Source: Podarcis bocagei
Lineage: Eukaryota
Direction: 5' to 3' (one strand)
Length of the DNA: 64,000 nt
NCBI GenBank assembly: GCA_964188305.1
Contig: OZ076886.1
Part shown: piece after piece, positions 481 through 63,633 of the stretch
Layout of the letters: each line of letters opens with the position of its first letter
Numbering within the stretch: position 1 is the first letter of the stretch
Made by a program: the position numbers and the translations under genes
The notes under the pieces: model-generated
What the model was told of the DNA's origin: nothing
The model's database searches: none
The model's input: only the letters and a program-made list of their open reading frames with translations

Positions 481-603
481 CTCTTTTGCAGCCTTTAGAG
501 CTTCTATCCATTCATCCCGCGAAATATTTATCGACAAGTTGGACTCCTGCCACACTTCCAGTTTGTGAAGGTAGTTGTGGACCGCAGAGCGCTCAGGAAA
601 ATA
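481..603 (-). CDS. QSOX1-like: QSOX-like exon 9 (gene continues left of the window)
   Basis: 123 nt: YFPERSAVHNYLHKLEVWQESNLSINISRDEWIEALKAAKE, cf. YFPGRPLVQNFLHSVNEWLK; GT donor at 480. Confidence 0.9.
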
Positions 604-1324
604 CTGAAACAAAGCAACAGGAAACAAAATTAACAAGAGGAGCCCAGTAAACTTCTACCTGTGATGGAACTGAATGAAAAGTGGTGTTGTAGCTCTGTAG
701 ACTATTCGCTGGGCTATGTACATACTGCAGGGTTATGTAAAAACAAAATACTGGGTTGTACACCACCAAGTCATCCCCAAAGAGCAAGGATGTCAACCTG
801 CATAATTTGACTTCCTCTCTTTGCCCCCTGCCCCTACAATGTGCTCTCGGGGTTCTACCAACCCACTTGGGCAGACTGGGGAGGGGCATGAGAGAGCAAA
901 TTGGAAGTTCCAGTGCATTTGCACTCAAGGGAGAATTTGGCTGGACACAGAGTTCAGGTACTTGAGAATCTTAGTTTTTCTTTCTTTCCAAACCCCAAAC
1001 TTCCTTTGTACCCAGGTAGGTGTATGTACTAGGAGCTCAAAGGCACAATTTAACTTTAAATGAATGCCAGCTTGACACACTGTATAAACCAGGAATCCTG
1101 TTCCCGCAACAAAGGAGCCAAGGTTAAGCAATCAGCCGTCTTGAGCTGCTATTATCAGAAAGCTGATTAAGTCCTTGGATTTAACTATTCCACCAATACC
1201 ACCTTTTGGAATCTACCTTCCAGGTAGAAAGACAAGGCGCTGGTACCTGAGGTAACCCAGGATGATACAGTGGTCCGTGGTGCTGAAAGTGTCATGCCCC
1301 CACCATTATTTATTAAATAAATAA

Positions 1325-1397
1325 ATGTTGCTGGGGATTGAACCTGGTGCCTTTTGCATGCAAAGCAGATGCTCTAGCACTAAGCTATGGCCCTTCC
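1325..1397 (-). mobile_element. tRNA-derived SINE head
   Basis: A/B-box-like GTGCTAGAGCATCTGCTTTGCATGCAAAAGGCACCAGGTTCAATCCCCAGCA. Related copies at ~9190-9380, 16095-16215, 25150-25330 and 41515-41705. Confidence 0.75.
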
Positions 1398-2536
1398 TCA
1401 CTCCTGTTAAGACTCTCCTGGCACCAAAAGTTGGATATCTCCAACACGAGGTCCAAGAGCACCTGTGTCTGCTCAGGCAAAGCAAGGTAGACAATACAAC
1501 CAGAGATTCATTCAGTCCTCTCTTCCATGCTTTACCCAAAGACTGGGTTCATACATTGCAAGGAGTTATTCTCACCAACCCTGTTGGGTTTTTTTTAATC
1601 AGGCACCTTGCCATGCAACCCACACACCAGAAGCATAGCATCAACCATATGTTTAATTCATCACATTAAGCAAAGAAGAATTATGTTAGAGCAGTAGGGA
1701 CCCTTTCTTTCCCTCCAGGTGTCTCTGGCTCCTGTTTCTTGCAAGTGAGCAGCTGCAGTAATTCAGGCAGTTGCTCAGTAGCTTGGATGCTCAAAGCCTC
1801 TAAGTAGATCAATCAATCTGAAACATGGCTTGCCATCACAGCATGAGGATACAATACAGAATGTTAAAACCACTCCAGTGTCACAATGCAACTTTCTCTT
1901 CAATAGTTCAGCAGACAGACACCTCCACCTGAGCTATTCTTCCTCTGTTGTCTCTCCTTCTCTCTGCAGGTTAATTTGCTCAGATTTGCAAGCTCAGCAT
2001 GCTCAAAATGGATTAGGAGCTCACAGAGCCTTCTCTGAAGAGCAGCAATCCATTTCTTAGCCTAGTGATTTTTTTTTCAGGCAACTCAGTCAATAGCTCT
2101 GTGATCTCAGCCCACAACCAGGAACAGGCTCACAATCCCTTCTAAAGTTCCCAACAACTTTTCCCTTTAATCAAACCACGCTGTTTCAGAGGAGGTAGTT
2201 TAAGGCCTTCCCTCTAGAATGCTGACTCACATCTAAGCAGCATACCAAGCAGGAAACTGTTCCCTAGTCTAGCCCAAACTCCCATAGTTCTTTTGTATTC
2301 TCATCCTAGTATTAATTTTTTTGCGGGGGGGGGGGGAACCCCACTGCTAGATTGTATGCAGGAACCATTCTACTATTTACACTATGTCTTCCTTCAAAGC
2401 CTTACGTTGGTGTCCAACTTCAGGTACAAACTCTCAAAAATGGATTTTTTTTCCAAGTAAGAAGCTCTGAGTCTGAGATGGAACTCTGATAGATATATGA
2501 CGTTTATATTCTGCATGTAGTTGCTGACAGGGAGAC

Positions 2537-2541
<5 letters not shown>

Positions 2542-2601
<60 letters not shown>
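2542..2601. repeat. (GA)n microsatellite
   Basis: Seen directly. Confidence 0.95.
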
Positions 2602-2604
<3 letters not shown>

Positions 2605-3131
2605 GAAGAAAGAGGGAAAGGTAACTGAAGAAACAACAGGTTGACCAGGGGATGGGCTGAGTGGGACAACAGATGGAGAGGAAATGGGGAAACTGGCTTG
2701 TTTTAATTGTGTGCAGAGCAACCCTAGGAAAAGTTTGCTTGCTGATACCGTCCACTGCAGAGTTTCAAACATAAAAGCCACTTCCCCTCTCAAACAAATC
2801 TGCCTTTAGCTAAGGGAATATCACAAGGCTAGGCCAAAATTATGCAGGAATGCAAAAGAACAATCTTACACAGTTAAGTTTTAAACTTGACCATGTCAAG
2901 CCTACTTCAGAAACTGTTTTCCTCCTCAAAACATAGCTTAAAAATAAAATAAAATGTGACAAGCATAGTTTTTATTTACTGCCCCAAAGGACCAAGTAAT
3001 CGCTCACAGAGAACTTTTGAAAATGAGAGAGCCCAAAAGAAAATTAAAATATCTCGCAAAACGTTCAAAAACGGAGTCGCTACTATACCAACAACAGAGA
3101 AGCCTGGATATACCATATGTAGAAAACTTAC

Positions 3132-3261
3132 CTTGGCCAGTATATGCACATACTGCTTCAATGCAGAGAGCCTCTCTTCAGTGAAGTTGGCTAAACTTAC
3201 TTCAATTCTGTGCAGGCTGCAAAGCACAGCATACTCCAGGTCAGCCATGCACAGCTGTGTC
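3132..3261 (-). CDS. QSOX1-like: QSOX-like exon 8 (helix-rich/pseudo-Erv region)
   Basis: 130 nt: TQLCMADLEYAVLCSLHRIEVSLANFTEERLSALKQYVHILAK, cf. SKIYMADLESALHYILRIEV...QRLVALKKFVAVLAK. Confidence 0.93.
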
Positions 3262-4041
3262 CTGTGACAGATAAGAAGGTGGAAAGATAACCTCATCATT
3301 GAAGCAGCCATATCATCTATATCACAAGAGGGCAGACTTCAGGGGTCATCTGTGTTTTTACCAGAGATGAACCAATTGGAACCTAGTGCAAAAGACACCC
3401 TAAGGAATTTTTAGGCCTGGAATTTGGTTTTTTGAGCACCAGAGCCAGAGGCGTACCTAGGGGTTGACTAGGTTGGCCCCTGCTAAGGGCACAGGCCTAG
3501 GGAGATGCAAAAATTGCACCTCTCCACTCTGTCTTGGCTCCTTTGGCAAGGTCGCAAGTGACAGGGGATGGGGTGCCAAGGGCACAAGGGAGCCTAGGTA
3601 TGCCTCTGACCAGAGAAGAATGGAGTTAACAGCCCTTCCACAGAACAATCCATTCCTAGTTTCCTTAAGCTTTTTTCTATTTCCATAGCATCATTTATGG
3701 TAAAGAGAACATTTTGGTTTTGCTGCTGGGAGTCAGAAGTCCTTGCCCATCTATTGGAAGTTACCTAGAAATCTATTCCACTCCTGATCTACCCTGCAGG
3801 AATCAGGAACTGGTTCAGAACCAAATCAGGGCCCACTTTGGCACCACCTGGACCACAACTCAGGTTGCTTCTCAGGGACTAACAGAGTCATCTTCAGTAG
3901 AAGGCCGCCTTCCCTTCTGCTCCCAAAGCTGTGCCTGATCAGCTACTGAATGTTCACCAAGTGTCAAGGATGACCAGTGTTACATAAATGCAGTGAGAAC
4001 AGAAGAAAGTGGAGGCTACTAAAATGGCTCTTGCTTCTTAC

Positions 4042-4176
4042 CTGTCTGCTACCTCCCAGGAGTCAGGGGTAGCCTTTGTTTCTGCTATTGGTGGCTTAGA
4101 AGTGTCAATGATTTCTCTCTGGACCCCAGGTAGTGTCCGCAGGAAGTCTGTATAGAAGGATCTTGAATTATTTGCC
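4042..4176 (-). CDS. QSOX1-like: QSOX-like exon 7
   Basis: 135 nt: ANNSRSFYTDFLRTLPGVQREIIDTSKPPIAETKATPDSWEVAD(R), cf. ESRSFYTAYLQRLSGL...VWKLADR. Confidence 0.93.
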
Positions 4177-5086
4177 CTGTGATGGAAGTAAAATATGAGA
4201 GGAGGCTCTGCTCTAAGATGGTGGGCAATTCTGACCTTCTGATGCAGGAGGTCTCGCTTTGCTACAACGCCATGGGCCATGCTGGCTGAGGCTGATGGGG
4301 GTTGGACTCCAGTCGCAACTGCAAGTCACCATGTGGGCCATCCTTGTCCTAACCCATTTCATGCAGCCCCTTCAGTTCAGCTGTCATAAAACCTGTTCAG
4401 CCCCCATTTTAGGTATGCAAGAGAGAAACAGTGCAGGGCACTCCATTGTGTAGCATCAACATGCACCTATGCACACAGTTGCACTGCCAAAAAAGATTTT
4501 GTGTTAAAGAAGTCCAAATCTGCTCCCAGAATGAGATATACCACCCATTATCTAAAAACCGAATTGCTTAATTGTGCAGAATTATAGGGCTAGAGCAGAT
4601 CCTGTCAGGTTGCAATTTGACATGCAATTCAGCATATGCAGTATGATATGGACCATGTATTTCCCCAGCAAAAATTCCTGATGCACATCATTGATTTTAG
4701 TGGCTGAACTTTAGTGGCCACTGAATTCCTTCAGATGATGGAATTTAGGATCTTTTAGTTTAGAACTCAAGACACACAGGCCCCTTCTGCACTATGCATT
4801 TAAAACAGTATTATACCATTTAAAACTGCCATGGGTTCCCCCCCCCCCGAAAGAATCCTGGGAGCTGTAGTTTGTGAATGGTGCAGAGAGTCATTGGAGA
4901 CCCCATTCCCTTCACAAATCAACAATTCACAGAGTTCACAGGCTGTGTAATAGGAAGACATAAGTAATTGCTCAATGGGGTTTGAAGGAATGTAGCTTAT
5001 AAATCATATACACAAGCACCATGAACACTGTTATGCAAAAGCAGCTCATATATGTATGTTGATTATGGATACCAGCAGCAACTCAC

Positions 5087-5232
5087 AGGGGGATGGGTGT
5101 GCAAGGGCCTTTGCTTGAATACAGGAAGCCAGAAGGGAAGGTGGTGACCTTGCATCTAGTCACTAGCTCCGCATTGCTCTTCAAGACTCTCCTCACAACA
5201 ATGTTTTCATACTGGGCCATGTCCAATATGAC
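5087..5232 (-). CDS. QSOX1-like: QSOX-like exon 6 (Trx2)
   Basis: 146 nt, not in the ORF track: VILDMAQYENIVVRRVLKSNAELVTRCKVTTFPSGFLYSSKGPCTPIP, cf. VALDLSQHKGVAVRRVLNTEANVVRKFGVTDFPSCYL. Confidence 0.93.
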
Positions 5233-6159
5233 CTAAGATCAGAAGTACACATTGCATTACGAATGGAGTTGCTCTTTTAGATTCACAAGCAAACCATCTA
5301 CCTTTCCTCCTCTTAATGCTTGTCTACCAAGTGATCAGATCATCTCTGCTGCATCTCAACAGAGTTTTAGTACCTACTCCCTTGAAGATGGTGCCGCTCT
5401 GGGTAACGCGCATGCCTCAGATGGTTCCTTTACAAACAGCTGAGGGTGTGGAAGGGCAGAAACAGCAGAAGACAGTGTCTATGCCCTTTTCTCCCAGAGA
5501 AAGCCCAAGATGGACCAGTTAACCTTTCCTCACACAGAACTATAAAAAGTATTAACTGCTTACACTGTGTAGACGTTTAGGCAAGAACTTTACAGCTGCC
5601 CGTTTTGTGTGTGGGTGTGCTACCCAAGTGGCCTTTGTAAAGTAAATCTGCAAGTTTCTTAACTTCTCATTGAAACTGAAGGCATTTTAATCCTACAACA
5701 ATCCTACAATTAATGTGAGTAAAAGTTACTTGTCTCTAGCTGGTGACTTATTTACAGAGTTATGCAACATGCAAATCTAACATATTTACAAGCCTAATAT
5801 CAGGCTTGTATCTGGGGTACACAGACTTCATGCATAAGGGGGTTTACTTTGTTTTTCACCAAACTCTTGAGATCCACCAACTGGAGATAAATTTCTGGAC
5901 TCATAATTCTTTTATTTTGAGGATCAGAACTTAAAAAACCTCATGGTCATAATTCCATAATTCATTCCCAGTTACCCTAATCTTTCTTCATCCAGCAGTA
6001 TAATTTGGGCTCATCTTGTTGCTGATATTGTTAAACTGCCCATAATCCAAAATCCAAAAACTTTGCCATAATCCAAAAGCTTTGCTGATCTACTGTGAAT
6101 CACACAGATCTAGATCTGCTCTGTCCAACCCTGTTTTTAATCAACCAATTAAAAATCAC

Positions 6160-6241
6160 CTCTCTGCCCAAAAAGGAGTCCTCCCCCTCGAATATCAGGG
6201 CCACCTTGCTTCCCTGAATGGAGTCAACAAATTCTGTGGTA
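6160..6241 (-). CDS. QSOX1-like: QSOX-like exon 5 (Trx2)
   Basis: 82 nt: TTEFVDSIQGSKVALIFEGEDSFLGRE, cf. YLALIFEKGGSYLGRE. Confidence 0.93.
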
Positions 6242-6729
6242 CTGTAAAATAGCAAAGAGAATAGCATGTTAAACAAAATTTGGACAAAGTCCCACATCAA
6301 CATTCTTTTCATGCAAATACTGGTCCTCCCAATAGCTCAATAGTTATTCCTGGGCATAAATCATGCACTGATCCCTTGACGTAATTGGATTTGGCATATT
6401 GACATGTGACACTGTGGGAGATTAGAAAATTAAAATGTCTTTTTAAAATTTATATATAAAGGCATTTATATACTGCTAACCTGTGTAAAATATCAAGGCA
6501 ATGTAACAAATATTCAATAAAACATAACACATCACGAATGATTGGCTAATCAAGAAATGTAAACAACTGTCTGCATAAAAGATCTGCCAAGCCTGAAAGT
6601 CAATAGTAAATATGCTTGCCCAATTTCTGCTGGAAGAGTATTCCATAGCATGGGACTGATGACACCAAATACCTGACTTCTTAACATATTTTGTGAAGAA
6701 ATTGATTGAAAGATGCCTAAAATATTTAC

Positions 6730-6835
6730 CTGAGCGGAGCCAACAGTGGGGCGTCAGGGGACCACCAACTACTTAGATGACTCTCTGCAAAGGTGATTAT
6801 GGCTTCCCTTAGGCTCTGAGGGTCATCCTTAATTT
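6730..6835 (-). CDS. QSOX1-like: QSOX-like exon 4
   Basis: 106 nt: (E)IKDDPQSLREAIITFAESHLSSWWSPDAPLLAPL, cf. DVQTLRERLIDALESHHDTWPPACPPLEP. Confidence 0.92.
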
Positions 6836-7837
6836 CTATGAGGGGAGGAAAAGGCTGATCATAACTCTGAGGACAGTCATTGTGCATTCTCCAACCCAAA
6901 CACCTCTCACAAACAGATGCCACGTGCCAGCAAAGGCTGCTTGCAAGCCAGATCCAATTTCTAACACATTTTGAATGTGAGCTTCCCTTTGGCCTTTAAA
7001 CTTTATTTATAAATATTTATATCCTAATCTTTACCTCAAAATCTCAGGGCAAGGAACGTTTTTTAAACAAACCCATTAAACAATAAAATCACTATTCACA
7101 CCAAGTAAAAAAACAAACCCTGAACAGCAGCATCTTTAAAAATCCCAAGCTGAACACTAAGAATTTCTAAAAGCTTGAGTACACAGCCATGTTTTAAGGT
7201 TGCTTTGGAACAGAAACTCTGAGAAAAATAGTGCTGTTTTTTTTAAAAAAAAACAAACAAACCATCCCTAAAATATAGTTACCACTCTGACCTTATCTTC
7301 TCTATGGGTATTGGGTTGTAGGCTGTGTATGCCTATTTTGGTTCTAAAACACATATCAGGAAGTCAAGTTCATCTTGCCTTCGGGACCAGAACATATATT
7401 CCTGTGACTCATCTTAACATATATAAATATTTGTGCAGTGTGCATGAATTTCCAATTTGCTAATATATTCCCATACAGGAGTGTGAACTCCAAGCTGCTG
7501 ATTGTCAGAAGAGTGGCAGGCTATTCTTTTAATTGCTCACTAAATGTGAAACATCACAAAAAGAGAAAAAGTAGGGAAGGCCAAAGAGATTGTGTCTGTC
7601 CTAGCTATTTGCACTGATAACCACCCTCCACCTTGGACAACCATGGCTCTGTAAGGCTTCCATGTGATCATGTGTTTCATCTGGGTGGAGAATGGGGAGG
7701 AGGGAGCAAGAAGCTCAGTTCTCCCTCCAGCTAGTCGCAGCCTAGCTAATTAACCTCTGACCCTCACCTCAGCAGTGAGAGCTCTAGATTCAAATAAATA
7801 ATTATGTGAGGTTTAGAATCAATTTCAGGACACATAC

Positions 7838-7886
7838 CTTCAAGCTTTATGCCATCGCCAGCATATGTAGAGGATGGCTTTAAAAA
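7838..7886 (-). CDS. QSOX1-like: QSOX-like exon 3
   Basis: AG/GT-bounded, 49 nt: FLKPSSTYAGDGIKLE; phases compatible with exons 2 and 4. Confidence 0.85.
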
Positions 7887-8808
7887 CTGGAAGAAAACAA
7901 ACCAGCGAGTTAGGTTTTGCTTTGGGCGTCATATGTTCAAGTCTGCTACAGCACGTAGGGCAGGCACCATACTGCCTAAGCACAAAGGTTGCAAGTTTGG
8001 GACTGCACCCATCTGTTTAGAAGTTCTGGCAAGGAGGATGAACTCCTTTTTGGACATTTTGGTGCTCCTGGATTCTTCTGGTGGTGACTAACTGGATTGC
8101 TCTGGCGGCCTCATCTCCTTCCTCTCTTCTTTTCTTATATTGCTTTCTATTTGTTATTGCTGCATATTGCAATATGTACATAGCAGTTGTGAATGTTGCA
8201 CATCCATAAGGAATGTACAGGGCCAGGGTCAGGGAATGGTAGTGTCAAGGACCCTAGGAACCCAAGAAGAGCAGCGACACCACTTCCTCCTTGATCGTCT
8301 GCTGCCTGCTCTCACTTCCATATGGAAAGCGTAGGGACAGTGGGACCCAGTGCTACTGCTGCCAGTAAATAAGTTAGACCTCTGGTCTTCAGAGTGCAGC
8401 AGAAGGTTATCTACAATAAATGAATGACCCAGGAAGGTGTGGATGTATAAATGAATACATTTGCCTTTTGCAAAATGTTATGGGAAAACAAGAAAATCAA
8501 TCAAAAGGTATCCTCACAGTGTTGGCATAACTTCACCATAGACTGAAACAGAGCTAACATTATGAAAAACACAAAGTGATTATCTTTTGTTACAATTTGA
8601 GACTATTGCTCATATAAGGATTTCAACAGCTTTTGAAGGAAATACAGAGATATGAAAAAGGAGGAAGCCAGTATAGTAACACTGGAATTGTAATTATGGT
8701 GTTGTATACTACATTTAAAACAGAAGACTGCCTGCCCCCCTTAAAACAAAATAAAAATCAGGTGGATCTCATAAAACTACGCCATCCAAATTTTCACATT
8801 ATCATTAC

Positions 8809-8909
8809 CTTCACAGTTGGGTATGCGGTGACTTCAAAGTCTGAACACATTTTCTCGTTGCACATCTTGCCACAATCTATCACACCCAGCTTCAAAGTAG
8901 GTCTCCAGT
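8809..8909 (-). CDS. QSOX1-like: QSOX-like exon 2
   Basis: AG/GT-bounded, 101 nt: (D)WRPTLKLGVIDCGKMCNEKMCSDFEVTAYPTVK, cf. QSOX1 WRPALYLAALDCAEETNSAVCRDFNIPGFPTVR. Confidence 0.93.
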
Positions 8910-9628
8910 CTGAAAAGGCAGATAAAACCATATGGGGTGGGGAAAAGATTTAATAGGGGATGGCTGCTTAATCTATCATAGAACGCAAAGTTAAGAGCAC
9001 TCAATGAACGCAGCAGCTTTTAAACATAAATGTGTCAATAGCATATACTATATATCTATATATATATATATATGCTATTGACACACATATATATCTCACA
9101 GTCAAAGAAAGGAGATAGGAAAGAGTGAGTGTTCTGAAGAACAAGGGGATGAAAGGGCCAGAGGGTGGAATCTGAAAGAAAAAGAACATAGAAACATATG
9201 AATCTGCCTTCTACTCAGTCAGACAATTGGGCCATCTAGCTCATTATTGTCCACTCAGACTGGTAGCAGCTGTCCAGGATTTCAGACTGGGGTCTCTCCC
9301 TTTCTACCTGGAGTTTCTGGGGATTGAACTAGGACCTTCTGCATGCAAAGGCCCTCAGCTGCTGAGCTACAGTTCTTCCCCTAAAAAAGAAGGCCTTGGA
9401 GACAGGACAAACATGAAGGGGTGCATGGGGGGGGGAGATAAGCCCCACTCTGTGTATCAAACCTAAGACATGGTGCACATATACCATTTGAATGACCATC
9501 AACCTGGGGGGGGGTGGCACCCTCAAATATTTTATTTGGGGTGGTGAAGACCCCTCGGCTCCTGGGAGTTGGCTCCAATGCCTTACAAGGTGGTGTACTG
9601 TGCAAAATAAGTGCCATTAGCTGGGATG

Positions 9629-9978
9629 AAGGTAAAGGGACCCCTGACCATTAGGTCCAGTCGTGGCCGATTCTGGGGTTGCGGCGCTCATCTCACTTTA
9701 TTGGCCAAGGGAGCCAGCGTACAGCTTCTGGGTCATGTGGCCAACATTACTAAACCGCTTCCGGCTAACCAGAGCAGCGCACGGAAACGCCATTTACCTT
9801 CCCACCAGAGCGGTACCTATTTATCTACTTGCACTCTTACGTGCTTTCAAACTGCTAGGTTGGCAGGAGCAGGGACAGAGCAACGGGAGCTCACCCCGTA
9901 GTGGGGATTCAAACTGCTGATCTTCTGATCGGCAAGTCCTAGGCTCTGTGGTTTATCCCACACCGCCACCCGCATCCC
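9629..9978 (-). mobile_element. Sauria SINE
   Basis: Reverse complement of the 37924 copy; GGGACGCGGGTGGC-type head and CCCTTTACCTT tail. Confidence 0.85.
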
Positions 9979-10489
9979 ATTAGCTAGGGTATCTAACCTT
10001 TTTTGCCTCAAGGGCCACACCGACCCATGTTCTATGGGGCAGGGGGTTGTCAAAGTGGGCATGGCCACTGTCTGCTGGCATTCAGAGACCACCTACTCAA
10101 ATGGAAGAAGCAAGAGATAGGGTGGTTCAAGCGGGAAAAAGCATGGGAGCGCCACGGAGCTTAAACTCAAGGCAGAGAGCCGGCTGGTGTCTCGAGGGTT
10201 GAGCAGAGAAGGGGGAATGCACGGGCTCCTGTCCCTTAAGATGCAGCAGTAGCCGCTCTCTCTGAGCATGACATGGGCTTTCTCTAAATAAGTTGGAGGG
10301 GCAGCCTCGACGCCCTGATAATTCTGCCTTGAACAGCGCGCAATGCGACTGTTCAAGGGAAAGAAAATCTCTGAGCATGCACAGAGGGTCCTTCCGTCAC
10401 ATTCACCAGCCACCAACGCCAAATCTGACGGTGAAGGGGTGTGTGAGAGACAGGTATCCCGGCAGCACAATTAGCCCGGCTTGTCCTAC

Positions 10490-10754
10490 CCTTTATATCC
10501 TGGGCGAGCGCTCGCCACGTGGGGGCGAAGGCGGCGGAGGCGGCAGACCAGCGCGCGTAAAACTGGACAACCCAGGCGCTGCGAGAAAAGAAGAGGCTTT
10601 GCAGCGTGTCCGGCTGCAGCTCCACCACGGGGTCGTGGGGTCCGTAGCGAGAGACGCCGCAGGCCTGCGACGGCGGGGAGAAGAGGCAGGCGGCGGCCAG
10701 GAGGACCAGGCAAGCGGGCAGCCCTGGCCCGACTCGGGGGAGACACCTCGGCAT
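10490..10754 (-). CDS. QSOX1-like: QSOX-family sulfhydryl oxidase paralog, coding exon 1 (signal peptide + start of Trx1; CxxC replaced by SxxS)
   Basis: ATG at 10754 gives MPRCLPRVGPGLPACLVLLAAACLFSPPSQACGVSRYGPHDPVVELQPDTLQSLFFSRSAWVVQFYARWSAASAAFAPTWRALAQDIK. This aligns to QSOX '[32 protein letters not shown]'. Phase-1 GT donor at 10489; lies in a CpG-rich island. Confidence 0.93.
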
Positions 10755-47320: not shown

Positions 47321-48030
47321 AGGATGACGTGGCCAAAATATCTGTGCCCCACTGGATTTTGAAGGCCTCCATCCCCAATGGGTACCTTTCAAATATATGA
47401 GCAGTTGCTTTTTATGCCTCCTTCCAGGAATTTCTTCCCTTCCGCAAGAAGTAGGGAAGACTCCCTTCTGTGACTGACACCCAGTCACATTCATGCTTGC
47501 TGATTGATCGCCAGTCCCTTCATATTATGAAGCAGTAGCAGACAATGCGGTGATGACATTTACCTGACTTCCCAAAAGGCGATTCAGTGCCGCTTACTGG
47601 GAAGGAGAGAGCAGCACAATGCAGACATACCTGCAAGAGCACCAGACTGGCTTTGCTGGTGCATTTGCATTGTGATGGCAGTGACTAACCTGCTGGGAGG
47701 TCAGGTAAGCACCTCCATACCATTCACTACTGTTACAAAGTGATTTCACACTTCTCCAACATCTTCTTTGTTCTGCAATATTTTTGGTGTTGTTTTTTGT
47801 TGTTTTTTTTTTTAAAGGATGAATCAACTTCAGAGGTAGAATGTGAAGGACTTTGTTGGAAGTGGTCTTCTTTCAAATCCGTTTCAACTGCATGAAAATG
47901 GAGAAGGACTCTCACAAATCCTCTTTTCTCAACAGGTGAACAACGAGGTCTTTTTCAGGTGTGCAACATGGTGTCAGAAACCTCTTCCAGCAGTGGGGCT
48001 GGCCTGTAGCACTATTTCAACATCGTCCCG

Positions 48031-48091
48031 ATGGCATCCCTCCAGCTCTTACCTCTGTGCTTCCTATTAGTAACCACTCAGGGATCTAATG
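48031..48091 (+). CDS. SECTM1: SECTM1-like Ig membrane protein, signal-peptide exon (exon begins at acceptor 47959)
   Basis: MASLQLLPLCFLLVTTQGSN + G|GTAAGC, phase 1. Confidence 0.82.
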
Positions 48092-48668
48092 GTAAGCATT
48101 CCTATTTCCATTGGTGACTGTGGGGTGCTTTGGAATTATCTTTTTCTCTTACTTTTGCCTTTCATTGCACAGGGATAGGCGATAGCCCCAGCTTTCAATA
48201 CTAAAAATATGTACCAGCTGCTCTGTGTTCAGGTATTCTGAGCTATTAAGCACATTTCTGAACAATGAGAGCTGTATTTCAGTAATATTACATAAATCTT
48301 GGTACAACTACAGCCATGGTGCATAAATCCTGATTAAGTACAGCTGTGCAAATTCTCTTGCCATGCATACCTTTCTAAGGGATGCTAGGCAGAAAGATGA
48401 GTCTGGTGTTGACCTTCAGAAGTTGGACTACAGGTCCCATAATCCCTCACCATTGGCCATGCTGGCTAGGAATGATGGAAGTGGAGTCCCACAATATATT
48501 GAGGAACACAGGCTCTGCTGTCAGCAATGGCTAACATGGGTTGTGCTTTGCAGATTGTATACAAAGTGGTCCTTATGTGCTAATTTATGCTCCCTACCTA
48601 TTGCTGTTGGTGATGGATTATATACTTTCCTGGCCAGTGCTCCTAACCAGATTTAAATGATTGAGTAT

Positions 48669-48673
48669 TATAA

Positions 48674-48749
<76 letters not shown>

Positions 48750-49190
48750 TCATCTTTATTGTCATTGCCCCCTCTCGGGGACAACGAAATTACTTGGCTG
48801 CTCCATCCACCCAGGTAGGGCACTCCACACAAAATCAAAACAACTATAAAAACACTAATTAAAACAATACAGTATAATACAGCAAGGAAGATTAGATGAC
48901 TTTCAAAGTCCAGGCTTCCCATTCAGGGCCAAGATCGCTCTGGAGAAGAAGCTGTTCTTAAGACGGCTCGTTCTTGTCTTCATCGTCCTGTATCTCCGTC
49001 CCGACGGCAGGAGCTCGAAGAGACAGTGACCAGGATGCGATGGATCTTTTACTATGTCCAGTGCCTTCCTATGGCACCTTGTGGCATAAATCTGCTCTAA
49101 GGTGGAGAGTGGGCAGCCAACAATGCTCTCTGCTGCCTTAACAACTCTGCACAACCCCAACCTGTCCTGGGTAGTACAGCATCCGTACCA
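48669..49190 (-). mobile_element. Rex1/Babar LINE 3' end with (TAT)n tail
   Basis: KDPSHPGHCLFELLPSGRRYRTMKTRTSRLKNSFF. Confidence 0.85.
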
Positions 49191-50163
49191 CACACACCAC
49201 TCCCTTCTAGCTTGTCTCCTTTTACTATTTTTCCCACAGCTTTATACTCCGACATGCATTTGTACAGGAGTAAGATGTTCAGCCCAAACCCACTCAGCAT
49301 TTTATGGTACAAGCCTATACATGTCTACTCAGAAGTAAGCACCAATGAGACTCCTTCTTCCCCAAATTAATGCCTTCCAGCTGTTCTGGACTACGGCTCC
49401 CATCAGTACCAGCCTGCATGGCCAACAGTGAGGGATTATGGGAGCTGTAGTCTAACTTCTGGAGGTCAGCATTAGTCTCATCTTTCTGTCCAGCATCTCT
49501 TAAAAAGGATGGGAGTTCCAGGTGGAGAAAGGCTTGTTTACGCTAACTGGTGGCAGCTTTCTGATGCCTTAGGATTGTACCTTTTGCTAGCCTTAGGGTA
49601 CAATCCTTATCTCAAGGGCTAAAACAGCCTTTACTAAACTTCCCTCCAAATGTTGTGGACTACAGCTTCCATCAGAGAGGCCAAGAGGTGGAGATGAGTC
49701 AGGCTGGTGAAGAGTCATACTGTAGGTGTCTTTCCCTCCTGCTCTGGCAAATTCCCACCCCCCACCCATCTCCCAGAACCAGGAGTGGTATGAAAGGGAA
49801 GGAGCAAAGACAGGTGCACAGGTGCAGTCTCTGATTGCTTGTGGGGGGGGGGGAATCCCGGAGATGAGGGGACTTTGGCAGCTGTGGGGAGGTGGGGGTC
49901 TTCAGTCTCAACAACTGCTTCACAGGAGTAAGACCTACTGGAGATGAGTCGCTGTGCTTATTAGGCCTGACACTCCTGTGCAGATTATACTTTTGGTAAT
50001 AAAGAGTTAATTCCAACTTTCACGTTGTGATTTACTGCTGGTTTGCTTCTGACACTGAGCTACAGCCATCCCTGACTGACATAATAGTGCCTTTTAATTG
50101 CCTGTTTCAGTGCTTGAATCAACTGATGCATTTGCTATGTCTCCCCACCCCATTTTCTCTCAG

Positions 50164-50487
50164 AATTCCCAAATTTCACATGTGTCGAAGATGTTATTGC
50201 AGCGCTTGGGAAAACCGTTAACCTTACATGTGAGAACAACAAAGCAATGCTAAATGCAACAGTGAAGTTCTGTCATAATGAGACAAGTTGTCCACAGGAA
50301 AGTGACCTCAACTCAATAAGAAATAAATATATTACTGACAATGGAAGAATTTCATTGATGGTGATAAATCAATCGGTTATCCTCTGTGTCCACAAAGTAA
50401 AAATATCTGACCAAAGACATTATAAGTTTTTTTTGGAAGCTGTTAATGGAGATGATCACAACAAAATTATATATCTAAAGGTTGTTG
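50164..50487 (+). CDS. SECTM1: SECTM1-like, atypical IgV exon
   Basis: (E)FPNFTCVEDVIAALGKTVNLTCENNKAMLNATVKF...GRISLMVINQSVILCVHKVKISDQRHYKFFLEAVNGDDHNKIIYLKVV. Has the SECTM1 pattern (cf. [20 protein letters not shown]; no F-strand Cys, YKFFL vs YMWHL). Phase 1-1; lies immediately 5' of CD7 on the same strand, as in mammals. Confidence 0.8.
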
Positions 50488-50688
50488 GTAAGTTTAAGCC
50501 AATGAACAACGGACATCAAGAACTCTGGGTTTGATGGAGCATGGGTTGGGGCTGGTGTCAAAAGCAAGGTGATATTAAAGTAATGAAAATGCATATTGGA
50601 GGAAGTGTGGGCATGCTAAACATATAGCAAACCCAGTTCTGTTTCTGAAAAAATAATGACCTTTAGTTGAATGTGGTCCATAATAGTC

Positions 50689-50974
50689 TGGGAACAATTT
50701 CTTTATTGTTCTATTTACATACGTAGGTACTTGGCTGCAAAATTTTGTTCCACCCCAGATAAAGCTGGTGACAACCTTTATAAAATTCTAGTGCCAGTTA
50801 AAGGCCTATTTATTACACAGAATCATAGAGTTGGGAACAATTTCTTTATTGTTCTATTTACATACGTAGGTACTTGGCTGCAAAATTTTGTTCCCCCCCA
50901 GATAAAGCTGGTGACAACCTTTATAAAATTCTAGTGCCAGTTAAAGGCCTATTTATTACACAGAATCATAGAGT
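50689..50974. repeat. 143-bp tandem duplication (2 copies)
   Basis: 50689-50831 and 50832-50974 are nearly identical. Confidence 0.92.
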
Positions 50975-51288
50975 TGGAAGGGACCCTTAGGATCATCTAG
51001 TCCACCCCCCTGCAATGCAGGAATGGGCAGCTGTCCCATACGGGAATTGAAGCTGCAACTTTGGTGTTATCAACACCACACACTAACAAACTGAACTATT
51101 TCCTGAGGCTTTGTGGTGAATTGTTGACTGCTGAGCTTATTATGTTATTTTAGATTTCTTCAGTCAGTTGTTTGCTTGTTTGTTTACTTATTTCTATACC
51201 ATCCTTCACCCAAGGATCACAGGGCAGTTTATGATATAAAAACACAAAAATACATATCACAGTAACAAACAAAAACAATACCACCCCT

Positions 51289-51295
51289 ACACACA

Positions 51296-51360
<65 letters not shown>
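51289..51360. repeat. Compound (CA)n(GA)n microsatellite
   Basis: Seen directly. Confidence 0.95.
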
Positions 51361-51362
<2 letters not shown>

Positions 51363-51641
51363 AGTTTAAAAGGCCATAATTTATCTTGGTTGGCTGGTGG
51401 TTTTGTTTATGTACATGAGATGTCTTCAACTAAGTCCTACTCAAAGTAAATTCAACAGAATTAATGAACTTAAGTTTGTAATGTCCATTAATTTCAATGT
51501 GTCTGCTCTGAATAGGACTATCTTATGCTTTTAACTACTGATATTGTAACCCACTTTCAGCTTCTTTTTCATAATGCAAAGTGGGGCTAGAAATATTTTA
51601 ATTGAATTGATTAAATAAGTTACCACCTACATATTTTCCAG

Positions 51642-51896
51642 CACCGTATTCTGAACCTCAAATCAAAATCCAGAAGGACACTGTGGTGTGCACAGCGTCA
51701 GGAGGGCATCCACAGAGGCAGCTCTATTGGTTTGGTGACCATGGAACCAACCTGACTCACAATTCAAAACTTGTGTCTTTGAAAAATGAAGATGGTTCAT
51801 TCTCTCTCATCAGTACTCTTCAGCGGCAGTCTCTTGACAGTGGCACGATATGCTGCTCCATCCTGAACAACAACACAAATTGTGATAATCCCCAGG
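51642..51896 (+). CDS. SECTM1: SECTM1-like, B7/butyrophilin-type IgC exon
   Basis: (A)PYSEPQIKIQKDTVVCTASGGHPQRQLYWFGDHGTNLTHNSKLVSLKNEDGSFSLISTLQRQSLDSGTICCSILNNNTNCDNPQ; AG/GT-bounded, phase 1-1. Confidence 0.85.
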
Positions 51897-53760
51897 GTGA
51901 GTTCAACAAAAATGTCTTGTTGCCTACAGACTAAACTGTCCAGAAAGCCATGGCAGTGACACTGGCTTGGATCCATTTCAAAATCAACTTTAACTTGTAC
52001 TGTAGTGGAAGATTTTTGGGTGGGGAATGGGTATTTTGAGAGCAAATTAACTGACAGGAAACTGGTTGTGATTTTGATTATGTTGTGAACTGCCCTGAGA
52101 TCTATGGATGAAGGGTGGTATACAAATTTAATAAATAAAGAATAATAAAATAATAATAATCTAGATGGGAATGTGTTTTGGGGGGAGGGGTGAATTGGAA
52201 AGAAATGATTGGTGGGTTTAATGTTTGGAGCCCAGAGCCCAGTCTCTGCTCTGTACTGGGGTCACTTCTAGAGAACCTGTTTATTGAGCATTCATCCTGA
52301 TTTTTTGTGTGTGGGGATGTTAAGCAATCAATGATGTTTCATCAAGCAATCGTTACCCCACACTTTCTGGTGTGTTTTCCTGTCAGATTAAGTCAGAATT
52401 GTGGGGTGGGTGAGTTTGTTATGCAAGAGCTCCAGATTAAGTTTAACTGAGCAACCTGAATTTCCTGTGTCAAGAGCCCAGGCTGCCATCTTGATAACAC
52501 AGCACGTAAGTCGTAATTAGCTAGAAGATTTATTGCGATACAAACAATTAGTCTCGGACGTCTAACCAAGCATCTGTGCCTTACGAGTCAGTTGACCCTT
52601 CTGAGGAGTGCTTCCTGGTTCTGCAGAATATCCTGAACCTATGACCCTTATGTCTCTGGGTTTGTTTCCTGTCTAATACCTTTCCCATACATCTACTCTT
52701 TGGGCTCAGGGGATTAATTGCCTCCTCTTCCAGTGAAGAAATGCTACCCCTCCTGCTTTCTGAGCCTTCCTGTGCTTCTTAAGCGAGTTGACTTCTCTCC
52801 CTTCCACTCTCTGCTAACACCTTATCTACATTCCATTCCTTGTCAGGAGGAGGGGAGGGGGGCTGCTCCCAGCTGTCTGACTGCTTCCTAACTCATGCTG
52901 TATTTCTCTACTTGGGGCAGATGTGTTCATGACATCCTGGTATGTGATTGAATCCTACCCAAAATAGCAATGGTCTACAAGTGCCCTGAGTTTGTGGCCT
53001 TAGCTAGTCACTTATTTTGAGCTAATCCAACACTGCTCCTTGCAGTAATCATTTCGTACCCTCCAACATTTTTCAGATTAAAATAGGGACGTACTATTCT
53101 AACATCATCATCACCATCATCATCATTTTATTATTTATACCCCGCCCTTCTGACTGGGTTGCCCCAGCCACACAGGGTGCATTCCAACATATATAAACAT
53201 TGAACAACTTCCCTGTTGTTTAATGAGATGTCTTCTAAAGGTTGTATAGTTACTTATCTCCTTGGCTCAGGGGTTGGATAACTCCATACCCTCCAGCATT
53301 TCCCCAATGAAAATAGGGACGTTGTAAGGAAAGTGGGACATTCTGAAATCAAATCAGAAACTGGGATGACTTCTATAAATCCAGGACTATCCCTGGAAAA
53401 TAGGGACACTTGGAGGGTCTGCCATTTGCACATCTCCAGGAAGCTTACAAGCAGGATCCAAGGACCACGGCCTTTCCCTCTCATCTGTCTCCTGCATCTG
53501 GTATTCAGGGGTGTACTGCCCCAGAACATGGAGGTTTTATAGGAGCGACTTCCACTGACAGATTCATGATGGAGGAGTGGAGCTGAGGAAAGGGATGTTG
53601 GCAGTGGTTTTATGATTATTTGTAGCTTCCTCACTTTTTTGAGCTACTGGTGGCTTGATTGTACCTGAGACTTGGGTATTTGCAGATTGTCATAGTCAGT
53701 TGTGTCCAAAGATACAATTCACTCCAGATGTTGCTTTTTTTCTCTTCCCCTCCTGTACAG

Positions 53761-53907
53761 GTTCTGCTCTTGTTCGTGTTGGAAATGAAACAACTACCAA
53801 TAAAGTATCACAAGATGCAGAAAAGAAAATATTAATTCCAGTTTTCATCGTTGTTATCCTGGCAGCCATTTGTGCTGTTACGTTTTTTCATTGCAGAAAG
53901 AAGAAAG
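53761..53907 (+). CDS. SECTM1: SECTM1-like, stalk + transmembrane exon
   Basis: (G)SALVRVGNETTTNKVSQDAEKKILIPVFIVVILAAICAVTFFHCRKKK; hydrophobic span followed by a basic stop-transfer; phase 1-1. Confidence 0.85.
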
Positions 53908-54404
53908 GTCAGTTTTTATAAGAATTGGCTGGGGATTCGTGTTTTTCTTCCCAGGATATCATTTGGAAACATATGGGGGAGGAAACTTCTCCAGGGAGCT
54001 TATATACATGTGTGTGTGTTTGTGTGTGTATTACAAGAAAGATCTGTGTGGAGCATATAATTTACTTATTAGAATAATTGTTCCCCCACAATCTTTGGGA
54101 CTCAACACTTCAGTTTTGCCTATAATAAGCCTACCCAGGCACCAGATGATGCTCGCTGTAGCATTTAAATTTCTTCAGCTTGAATCCAGAGGAACTACCA
54201 CACAGTCCAGCCATGCACCCCAAGTCTGCCTCAAGATCAAACTCTTCCAGTGTGAAGTGTGCCTGGGCTGGGGTGATGCGAAGGTAGGCATTCCTCGTTG
54301 AGCCTTGAGCTGGGTGGCTGTCCTACTGCAGAGTTTAGGCTGGAGAAGTTTTTGCTGCCATGATGAAATCACTACAAAGGCAAAACGTGCTTGCTGTTTT
54401 GTAG

Positions 54405-54517
54405 ATTCATGCACAGGAGTTTGCGGGAGGACAGAGAAGGTCCCCCTCTCCAAGGGTTCGACTTCACCTGAATACACCAGTCCACCTGAATCAGTGATAT
54501 CCAGAGTTCAAAGATAA
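54405..54517 (+). CDS. SECTM1: SECTM1-like, cytoplasmic tail exon (3' end uncertain)
   Basis: TTTTGTAG acceptor, then (D)SCTGVCGRTEKVPLSKGSTSPEYTSPPESVISRVQR*. May instead splice to the acceptor at 55060. Confidence 0.6.
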
Positions 54518-55758
54518 ACAAGAACACCCGGTTTTACTGCTCTTATGGCGTGGGTGTCTAGACTCTGGCTGGGGGAGCCATGGGGTGGGTAGTAGAGTGC
54601 TTGGGTGCATTGCTTTCCCCCTGACCACAACATTTGTTTTTCTTTTGGCTTCAACTATTTTTTAAAAATTCACCTGCGAAAATTCTATATTTGAAGTGAA
54701 ACTAATAAAATGCCAGAGAAACTGTGAGCATTGTGACTTGTTACAGCCACATAAAGCGTTTTCACCATCATGGAGTTCAAGCCAAGAATTATGCATATGT
54801 GCAACGAAAAGGCAACACAAACCACAACATTTCTGTGAAGAGTCAACAACTTGACTTTGAGTGAAAATGTTTAACAGCTTTTACAATAGTTTAGATGAAG
54901 TTTCAGCAAAGTATATAACCAGCGGCTACCAGGACATAGATGCCTTATTTTCTAAAGAGTGGAATGGATGGGGTAAAAGTTGACAGAAAAATACATAATT
55001 CTTCCTCTCCTCCCATCTGATTTGCCTTTTCTGGTTTCCCTTTGTTTTGTCATTCCTCAGGTGCAATAAGGAATAAATATCTCCAGCGGCTTTTCCTATC
55101 TGAAGGTAAATATCTATTAAGTCTGCTAGTTAGTACTGCAGTTAATAACACAGGAAGAAAGGTGTATACATTGCTCTGGCCTTTTCAACATTGGCATGTC
55201 ATAGAAAAATATTTTAGATATTATGCTGATAGGCGAATGATTTCTTAGTTCATTGCAATCAGTGGCATTCTTGCTGTCATCATTATTCTTTCTTTCTCCT
55301 AGAGATGATATAGGAATGTCAGTGACAAACCAAATTGAAGCAAATGCAGTGACTGGATCAAGAAACACATGGAAAACTGTAACACTGTGGGACTCTGCAA
55401 TTCAGATTGCGAAGGCAAGGGACTTCTGCTCTGCAAGCCCATCTTACGACATCTCTAAGCCATTTTAGTGTCTTATTAGTCAAGAAAGACTTGCCTTTCA
55501 TGTGAAAGAATCAGTCTGCTGTTTGGATTCCACTTCTTTCTCCAGCATAATAAAATGCATCTTTCTCCAGGTTTTGAACAGGGTTGTTTTCCTGCAGCAC
55601 TCCTTTATATAGCATCTGTAGATAGTCCTCTCTGTAATAGTTGCAGCAGACTAGGTATATTAATGTGGCAGCAACAGTATAGTCATCTGCATTCAAATCT
55701 CACCTTTGTTAAATACCTTCTGAAAAGCCTTGGACAAATCATGTGTCAGAATTGTGAT

Positions 55759-56016
55759 NNNNNNNNNNNNNNNNNNNNNNNNNNNNNNNNNNNNNNNNNN
55801 NNNNNNNNNNNNNNNNNNNNNNNNNNNNNNNNNNNNNNNNNNNNNNNNNNNNNNNNNNNNNNNNNNNNNNNNNNNNNNNNNNNNNNNNNNNNNNNNNNNN
55901 NNNNNNNNNNNNNNNNNNNNNNNNNNNNNNNNNNNNNNNNNNNNNNNNNNNNNNNNNNNNNNNNNNNNNNNNNNNNNNNNNNNNNNNNNNNNNNNNNNNN
56001 NNNNNNNNNNNNNNNN
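55759..56016. other. Assembly gap (N run), adjacent to a MITE end at 56017-56162
   Basis: N characters. Confidence 0.99.
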
Positions 56017-62263: not shown

Positions 62264-62605
62264 TCACAGAAAACAAACCAGAACTAATAGTTATCACTGC
62301 TGAGGAAGGGGAGTCTGTCAATATTACTTGCAAGTTTGACCAACTGGCGATGTCAGGGCTGCGTTTGAGACGGACACTTGTGAAAGCCATGGATGTGCTA
62401 TATGTGAAAAAGCTGGGTCTACGCATGACCAAAGCTCCTGAATATGCTTATCGCATGGAGTACTTTGAGCTGAAGAACGCATCGACGATAATGCTGAAGC
62501 ATGTGAAGAAGAATGACAGTGATGGGTATTTGTGTGGTGGCACCCTGATAATTAACCAGGAGCCCATGATAATGAATTTCAGCACTATCATCTTGGCAGT
62601 GAAAG
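62264..62605 (+). CDS. CD7: CD7 IgV exon (alternative in-frame acceptor gives start 62270)
   Basis: ITAEEGESVNITCKFDQLAMSGLRLRRTLVKAMDVLY...RMEY...TIMLKHVKKNDSDGYLCGG...TIILAVK, cf. human CD7 [22 protein letters not shown]..QDIIY...LTITMHRLQLSDTGTYTC. Confidence 0.88.
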
Positions 62606-63514: not shown

Positions 63515-63633
63515 AGACCTCAGCTATGAAGCTAATGGAGTGTCCTTCATTTCTCTGGGTGCCATATATCCTTATCTTCATGTCACTGCTCTTGCTTGTT
63601 GGACTGGGATATTTTATCCTATCTCATATAGAT
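63515..63633 (+). CDS. CD7: CD7 stalk + transmembrane exon (last exon lies beyond the window)
   Basis: (E)TSAMKLMECPSFLWVPYILIFMSLLLLVGLGYFILSHID|GTGAGT; phase-0 donor. Confidence 0.82.

Follow-up and report, generated by a model that had tools for sequence, protein, structure and literature searches.

A window of 64,000 nucleotides from Podarcis bocagei (contig OZ076886.1 of assembly GCA_964188305.1) contains on its plus strand, at 48031-55468, a six-exon gene for a 331-residue type I membrane glycoprotein that is probably the lacertid counterpart of SECTM1, and thus presumably a CD7-binding ligand, in a form resembling the B7 ligands. SECTM1 (K12) is the ligand of CD7, a receptor of T and natural killer (NK) cells with a single IgV domain. 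The lizard protein consists of a signal peptide, an atypical IgV domain, an IgC domain, a stalk with transmembrane (TM) segment, and a cytoplasmic tail of ~70 residues; it is encoded directly beside CD7, and it is transcribed and spliced with the exon for its IgC domain included. In the literature SECTM1 is treated as confined to eutherians and as a structural orphan whose only Ig-like domain is unusual (Bianchetti et al. 2015, PMC4603632). The reptile gene models themselves are already present in RefSeq; what appears to be new is the proposed link to SECTM1 and CD7 and, with it, the suggestion of a B7-like, pre-eutherian origin. Literature searches returned no paper tying SECTM1 to the B7 family or to non-mammals, and none linking the reptile V-C gene to SECTM1 and CD7.

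Transcription of the gene and character of its C domain

The starting point for this work was the original prediction, made from the letters of the window, that a SECTM1-type V exon is followed by an in-frame IgC exon within 50164-53907. The peptides it quoted are present where it placed them, and the ends of this span coincide with the V acceptor and the TM donor; as read, the V, IgC, and stalk/TM exons are each flanked by AG and GT, and each is of phase 1. RNA data over 47950-53949 comprise contigs of two runs (X1 and X5) and raw reads of two RNA-seq runs (X23 and X24). For runs X1 and X5 the record reads only "RNA?"; they were taken to be spliced RNA because their contigs carry intron-less GT..AG joints. 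The joints from signal to V exon (48091 to 50164) and from C to TM exon (51896 to 53761) occur in contigs of both X1 and X5, and the joint from V to C exon (50487 to 51642) occurs in X1 contigs and in two raw X23 reads that extend 52 bases to the shorter side of it; all three have GT..AG borders. No joint that skips from V to TM is listed in the RNA runs over this interval. Depth in X1 is 156–171 over V, 158–170 over C, and ~200 over TM, with values of ~2–12 in introns outside repeats; since the depth of the C exon is close to that of V and the introns are low, inclusion of the C exon looks constitutive in this sample. In addition, a 255-base loose end in X1 that leaves the TM exon at 53907/53909 maps uniquely to 55063-55092, and thereby defines a fifth exon of 45 bases. 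The six-exon gene is transcribed and is spliced with its C exon included, the last acceptor being placed by homology.

Evolutionary rates differ sharply between the exons. Compared with Lacerta agilis, the C exon is 96% identical at the amino acid level (dN 0.015, dS 0.183, dN/dS 0.08), the V exon 66% (dN 0.182, dS 0.129, dN/dS 1.41), and the V exon of the neighboring CD7 gene 90% (dN 0.055, dS 0.174, dN/dS 0.31). The nucleotide identity of the V exon to Lacerta is 84.7%, and that of the surrounding introns and intergenic DNA is 84.6–92.8%; being so near the non-coding level, the V exon appears to evolve at or above the neutral rate, a point estimate from one species pair. To judge from these substitution patterns, the C domain is clearly functional and strongly constrained.

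It is accordingly extremely improbable that the C exon is an unused genomic relic and that the mature messenger joins V to TM as in mammals. A V-TM isoform annotated in Caretta and the V-TM geckos could be cited for such an arrangement, but the V-to-C and C-to-TM joints are present where no V-to-TM joint is listed, the C exon is read as deeply as the V exon, its dN/dS is that of a constrained sequence, and it is included in the RefSeq models of Lacerta, Zootoca, and Rhineura. An unspliced C exon, which the original prediction had named as the outcome that would overturn it, is itself overturned by the two joints, and for the sampled tissues the RNA joints together with dN/dS rule out a pseudogene or an unspliced exon.

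The C domain belongs by homology to the B7 type, in agreement with the CD276/B7-like character proposed for it beforehand. Its exon matches Pfam C2-set_3 (the butyrophilin/B7 IgC) at 1.3e-7 (31.9 bits, cut-off 27), with weaker matches to C2-set_2 (CD80-like) and C1-set. In a phmmer search of PDB sequences the best match is CD276, aligned as had been described and ~30% identical by eye in the phmmer alignment. A profile of 16 family C domains retrieves CD276 from the PDB at 5e-9 (two-domain form) and 1e-19 (four-domain form), followed by PD-L1 (~1e-5), CD80 (4e-5), and ICOSL (1e-3), and these four proteins rank above all other single-domain matches. On this evidence from sequence the domain is a conserved IgC of the B7 family. 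The gene also shares with CD276 (B7-H3), PD-L1, CD80, and ICOSL the exon plan of signal, IgV, IgC, TM, and tail, in which the Ig and TM exons are bounded by phase-1 junctions, and it presumably shares with B7 ligands a partner that is a single-IgV lymphocyte receptor (CD7, encoded next door). It differs from them in that its V domain lacks the canonical B–F disulfide and is not specifically B7-like in sequence, and in that it lies at the CD7 locus and at no known B7 locus.

Several features of individual sequences were noted in passing. Between X1 and the window the C exon differs at 8 positions, 3 of them non-synonymous, and the X1 sample may come from a divergent population. In Zootoca vivipara (P0035, RefSeq isoform X1) about half of the C domain is tandemly repeated, the stretch from NSKLVSSKNEDG to CCSILNNN occurring twice, which is either an internal duplication or an artefact of assembly or gene modeling. 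In Caretta a fragment resembling half a C domain lies antisense in the V-C intron (L007:12000-12128, minus strand; tblastn E 6e-4). Finally, depth in the contigs rises to ~9,400 in two places of the window (48750-49350 in intron 1 and 50950-51149 in intron 2), in all four runs and with many loose ends; these stretches appear to be interspersed repeats whose transcripts come from many loci, and not parts of this gene.

Probable relationship of the V domain to SECTM1

In eutherian SECTM1 the Ig-like region is ~100 residues long, and GxYxWxLxGxQ is an invariant motif; of its cysteines only Cys38 and Cys55 are invariant, and these two, 17 residues apart, are unable to form the classical disulfide (Bianchetti et al. 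2015, PMC4603632). The reptile family shows a partly comparable pattern. Two cysteines (Cys6 and Cys21/22) are invariant in 25 members, none has a cysteine at the canonical F-strand Y-x-C position, an aromatic residue stands five positions before the first cysteine like human Trp33, and a Y-x-(W/F)-x-L element has an invariant Tyr and a near-invariant Leu. In turtles the form G-x-Y-x-W-x-[L/I], found in 12 of 13 sequences, retains four of the six invariant SECTM1 positions. The P. bocagei V domain has Cys6 and Cys22, five N-glycosylation sequons, and Y-K-F-F-L in place of the canonical F-strand cysteine; that of the gecko Paroedura contains exactly two cysteines.

Models of the V domain point in the same direction. 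AlphaFold2 (AF2) models of the lizard V domain (12-sequence alignment, pLDDT 84) and of a turtle V domain (25 sequences, pLDDT 94) both have an Ig fold, and in shape searches of the ESM Atlas both place the same two clusters at ranks 1 and 2. One comprises 88 members and is named "Secreted and transmembrane protein 1", with TM-scores of 0.82 for the lizard model and 0.80 for the turtle model and a root-mean-square deviation of 1.9 Å over 103 and 101 residues, respectively; the other is an unnamed chordate cluster (243 residues, 310 members) without Pfam domains. As far as models can tell, the informative point is that two divergent queries return the same top pair. In shape searches of BFVD, A0A650AIS6 (an unnamed viral protein of 246 residues) was on top for both V models, its E-value leading the next match by nearly two orders of magnitude with the lizard model and by about one with the turtle model. 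The only reported viral SECTM1 homologue is EMCLV007 of a poxvirus, a homologue of equine SECTM1 with an open reading frame (ORF) of 741 nt (PMC8515872). The length of A0A650AIS6 equals that of EMCLV007, which is no more than a lead that the two may be one protein; a literature search on the accession returned nothing.

Synteny provides a further link, as SECTM1 and CD7 are neighbors in human, mouse, and rat (PMC4603632). In the window a CD7 V exon follows on the same strand as the SECTM1-like gene, which thus lies upstream of CD7 as mammalian SECTM1 does. Against PDB sequences this exon alone matches human CD7 best, although weakly (E 0.015); the matches ranked next all belong to PD-1, a receptor of the CD28 family, with E-values (0.5–1) short of significance, a weak hint for a CD28-like reading of CD7. 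With a two-species profile built from the window and Paroedura exons, CD7 scores 42.7 bits over a single stretch (E 4.8e-10) and is the best single-domain match, polymeric Ig receptor outranking it only by summing several weak domains. The CD7 V exon also lies downstream on the same strand in Lacerta agilis (90% identity) and Paroedura (46%), and the tail-to-head order of V-(C)-TM gene and CD7 on one strand is thus found in three squamates (Podarcis, Lacerta, Paroedura). In Eublepharis a 207-residue V-set gene starts at the corresponding place, just inside the fetched stretch; CD7 was not found within 10 kb of the Eublepharis gene.

Compared with eutherian SECTM1, the reptile protein has the same type I membrane topology: a signal peptide, an Ig-like domain of ~100 residues at the N-terminus, and one TM helix. 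The two also have in common a pair of N-terminal cysteines in the absence of the classical disulfide between the sheets, an aromatic residue (Trp in the turtle sequences) that occupies the place of the F-strand cysteine within Y-x-W/F-x-L, fast evolution, and a gene directly beside CD7 on the same strand. The differences are that the reptile protein has an extra B7-type IgC between V and TM, that its V domain has two more cysteines (Cys36 and Cys42, absent in Paroedura), and that the G-x-Q end of the motif is absent, with no significant pairwise sequence similarity obtained. The single extracellular Ig domain that characterizes SECTM1 is thus not the architecture of the lizard protein, but it is that of the gecko orthologues (Eublepharis LOC129326925, Paroedura LOC143832763). 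These have the same V and TM segments upstream of a CD7-like gene, have no genomic C exon, and so reproduce the mammalian single-domain architecture, with Paroedura having only the two SECTM1-type cysteines.

Sequence searches with the V domain return relatives in reptiles only. The Pfam V-set match of exon 2 is weak (0.0016, 19 bits, below cut-off). Among 1.84 billion protein representatives, phmmer returns 12 proteins at E<=1e-3, ten of them real and all from squamates or turtles. Word-index searches with the turtle V region and the family alignment added lacertids and many turtles. RefSeq models from Lacerta agilis (LOC117039169, 80% identity to the window protein), Zootoca ("butyrophilin-like protein 2", 73%), and Rhineura (LOC133379996, 49%), together with turtle models called "CD276 antigen-like", are orthologues with identical domain order. 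The names that NCBI gives to the orthologues are CD276 antigen-like, ICOS ligand-like, PD-L1-like, butyrophilin-like 2, or uncharacterized, none of them SECTM1 or CD7-linked; they go back to the resemblance of the C domain to B7 proteins. By sequence, neither V domain (lizard or turtle) nor the V profile matches anything in the PDB but generic Ig domains, and no chain among the matches shown is named SECTM1; the profile matches include BTN1A1 at 3e-4 over half of the domain. Foldseek of the V model against the PDB likewise gives generic V domains (e.g. CRIg, antibody V), and a search of the ESM Atlas by language-model features, among named and unnamed clusters, gives generic V-set clusters among those shown.

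A number of these and other results weigh against identification with SECTM1. Single-sequence phmmer among the 1.84 billion proteins gives no significant match to eutherian SECTM1 and none beyond turtles; the word-index search with the V exon returned no candidates, that with the turtle V region reached turtles only, and that with the family alignment reptiles only. Protein searches detected no family members in birds, crocodilians, amphibians, monotremes, or marsupials. The two cysteines are 15–16 residues apart versus 17 in human. In the lizard motif R-x-Y-x-F-x-L, Y and L alone agree with the six invariant SECTM1 residues, W being replaced by F; the Gly that follows the Leu stands at another distance, and the G-x-Q end is not conserved. 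In the shape searches other Atlas V domains follow at TM-scores of 0.71–0.81, only slightly lower, so that the margin is modest. CD7 was not found within 10 kb downstream at the turtle and Rhineura loci. The link to SECTM1 consists of three indirect lines (synteny, published hallmarks, and model shape), which in combination make it probable. Of the earlier claim that the V domain is of SECTM1 type, what stands is the agreement with the published hallmarks and the shape rank of 1–2 in two models, and what is not established is homology to eutherian SECTM1 at the level of sequence.

An ordinary, fast-evolving member of the B7/butyrophilin group that lies beside CD7 by chance, eutherian SECTM1 having arisen separately, is the principal competing explanation. 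Consistent with it are the automatic orthologue names, the firm statistics, which exist only for the C domain and B7 proteins, the generic Ig matches of the V profile with BTN1A1 among them, the failure of V sequence searches to reach any eutherian protein, and a tBLASTn survey of 2015 that found SECTM1 in eutherians only (PMC4603632). Such a protein would, however, be expected to have the canonical B–F disulfide, which is missing and in place of which stands the N-terminal cysteine pair that defines SECTM1 (PMC4603632); nor would it account for GxYxWxL in turtles, for the SECTM1 cluster at rank 1–2 among Atlas representatives from two models, or for a position and orientation relative to CD7 that are those of SECTM1. 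The V domain, moreover, evolves fast enough to escape BLAST, and the label "eutherian-specific" of 2015 can be attributed to this, as a V domain of such rate would escape tBLASTn surveys. A chance neighbor from the B7/butyrophilin group is thus considered unlikely, and the lizard gene is likely to be orthologous or co-orthologous to eutherian SECTM1.

Loss or gain of the C exon

The V-C gene, as identified by homology, is present across squamates and turtles. All members of the reptile family have the domain order V-C-TM apart from the models of two geckos, an isoform of Caretta, and a single V-only fragment. In maximum-likelihood trees of the V domain (25 rows) and of the C domain (16 rows) the division between squamates and turtles has 100% support, and each tree recovers the lacertids and a group of skinks with a cordylid; from this congruence it follows that the V and C exons have been together since before the turtle/squamate split. 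Among turtles (Malaclemys L001 and L002; Chrysemys, Emydura, Mauremys) two V-C-TM paralogues stand in tandem on the same strand.

A distance of ~1.1–1.2 kb separates the V exon from the TM exon in the two geckos Eublepharis and Paroedura, and no C-like sequence or C-exon relic is detectable between them in either gene. Because turtles and other squamates share the C exon, the V-TM form of geckos represents a secondary loss. In Caretta a RefSeq isoform omits the C exon precisely. With the exon lost in geckos and skipped in this isoform, loss in the mammalian lineage is plausible as well. The original prediction, that an ancestral V-C SECTM1 lost its C exon in mammals, is therefore feasible as to mechanism, geckos having done the same, but without an outgroup a gain of the C exon on the sauropsid stem would explain the data just as well. 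The variant in which a B7 C exon was shuffled in within sauropsids has to be moved back in time, as any shuffling predates the turtle/squamate split (the V-C form is present in both groups and the trees are congruent).

Stated fully, the insertion scenario accepts the gene as a SECTM1 orthologue and assumes an amniote ancestor with V only; a B7-type C exon entered the phase-1 intron between V and TM on the sauropsid stem, before turtles and squamates separated, and mammals lost nothing. Phase-1 junctions around the V, C, and TM exons would allow an Ig exon to be inserted with the frame kept, no outgroup with a V-C SECTM1 was found in protein searches, and the V domain has no specific affinity to B7 V domains. 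On the other hand, the shared history of V and C reaches back beyond the squamate–turtle split, loss is documented in geckos and skipping annotated in Caretta where gain is undocumented, and the C domain, at its low identity to CD276, is no recent copy of a known B7 gene. Insertion on the sauropsid stem is thus regarded as possible, although doubtful.

Gene model and proposed function

The coordinates of the gene model and of the CD7 exons are given in Table 1. Exon junctions are of phase 1 wherever checked, and the assembled 331-residue model contains eight N-glycosylation sequons and, by hydropathy, one TM helix. Exon 1 was predicted as the best upstream candidate (ATG, hydrophobic core, and GTAAGC donor) and was later matched by the RNA joint; its 5' untranslated region reaches upstream past 47950, and the encoded N-terminus agrees with the Rhineura, Zootoca, and Lacerta orthologues. 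The translation of exon 5 agrees with the Lacerta and Zootoca proteins. For exon 6 two AGs lie side by side, just one of which keeps the frame; the translation from it agrees with the protein tails of the orthologues in Lacerta, Zootoca, and Rhineura.

Table 1. Positions of the exons of the SECTM1-like gene and of its CD7 neighbor in the window.
Feature	Position	Strand	Remarks
Exon 1, coding part	48031..48091	+	ATG and signal peptide; 20 codons + 1 base; phase 1
Exon 2, atypical IgV	50164..50487	+	107 full codons; RNA joints on both sides
Exon 3, B7-type IgC	51642..51896	+	84 full codons, starting A-P-Y-S-E-P; RNA joints on both sides
Exon 4, glycosylated stalk and TM	53761..53907	+	Helix at ~residues 235-258; basic stop-transfer RKKK; RNA joint from C exon
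Exon 5, cytoplasmic	55061..55105	+	45 bases, 14 codons plus split codons; loose RNA end, AG/GT sites
Exon 6, tail and stop	55305..55468	+	Acceptor from homology, not seen in reads
CD7 V exon	62264..62605	+	6.8 kb downstream of the SECTM1-like stop codon, same strand
CD7 TM exon	63515..63633	+	tblastx-conserved with Lacerta L006:26812-26943 and Paroedura L005:26631-26762; splice sites read

Two variations within the coding sequence were observed. The assembly reads TGT (Cys) at 50385-50387, V residue 74, where the RNA contigs of X1 and X5 read AGT (Ser); this residue is Ser in Lacerta and Asn in Zootoca, and the difference appears to be a polymorphism through which the domain gains an unpaired cysteine. 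At the 3' end (55440-55468, compared with Lacerta L006:19562-19615) the last 14 residues are in another frame, the Lacerta and Zootoca proteins ending ...AKARDSV, and an indel near the 3' end thus makes the C-terminus differ between close relatives. No paralogous V or C exons were found elsewhere in the window. Upstream of the SECTM1-like gene lies a QSOX-like gene (481-10754, minus strand), and the intervening 37 kb consist mostly of transposon-derived ORFs, including a hAT-like element at ~38.8–41 kb. The assembly contains a run of N at 55759-56016.

By analogy with mammalian SECTM1 and with B7 ligands, the SECTM1-like protein would stand on the cell surface, the IgC domain serving as a rigid spacer that presents the membrane-distal V domain. 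In trans, this V domain would bind CD7, itself a receptor with a single V domain, on T and NK cells. In placental mammals loss of the C exon would have led to the single-domain form, a change mirrored independently in geckos. A fast V domain and a slower CD7 would fit a ligand under pathogen pressure or in co-evolution. Opinion is evenly balanced on the broadest form of this proposal, according to which SECTM1 is a divergent B7-family ligand of at least amniote age, CD7–SECTM1 is an ancient linked pair of the CD28/B7 type, the IgC domain was lost at least twice (in mammals and in geckos), and the V domain is under diversifying selection.

If the lizard gene is an orthologue of SECTM1, the co-stimulatory axis of CD7 would date at least to the amniote ancestor, and SECTM1 would gain a family, that with the B7-ligand architecture. 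Its apparent absence elsewhere would be explained by a V domain that evolves at or above the neutral rate. Geckos and mammals, which are without the IgC domain, and lizards and turtles, which keep it under strong constraint, would then offer a natural experiment on the role of the IgC spacer.

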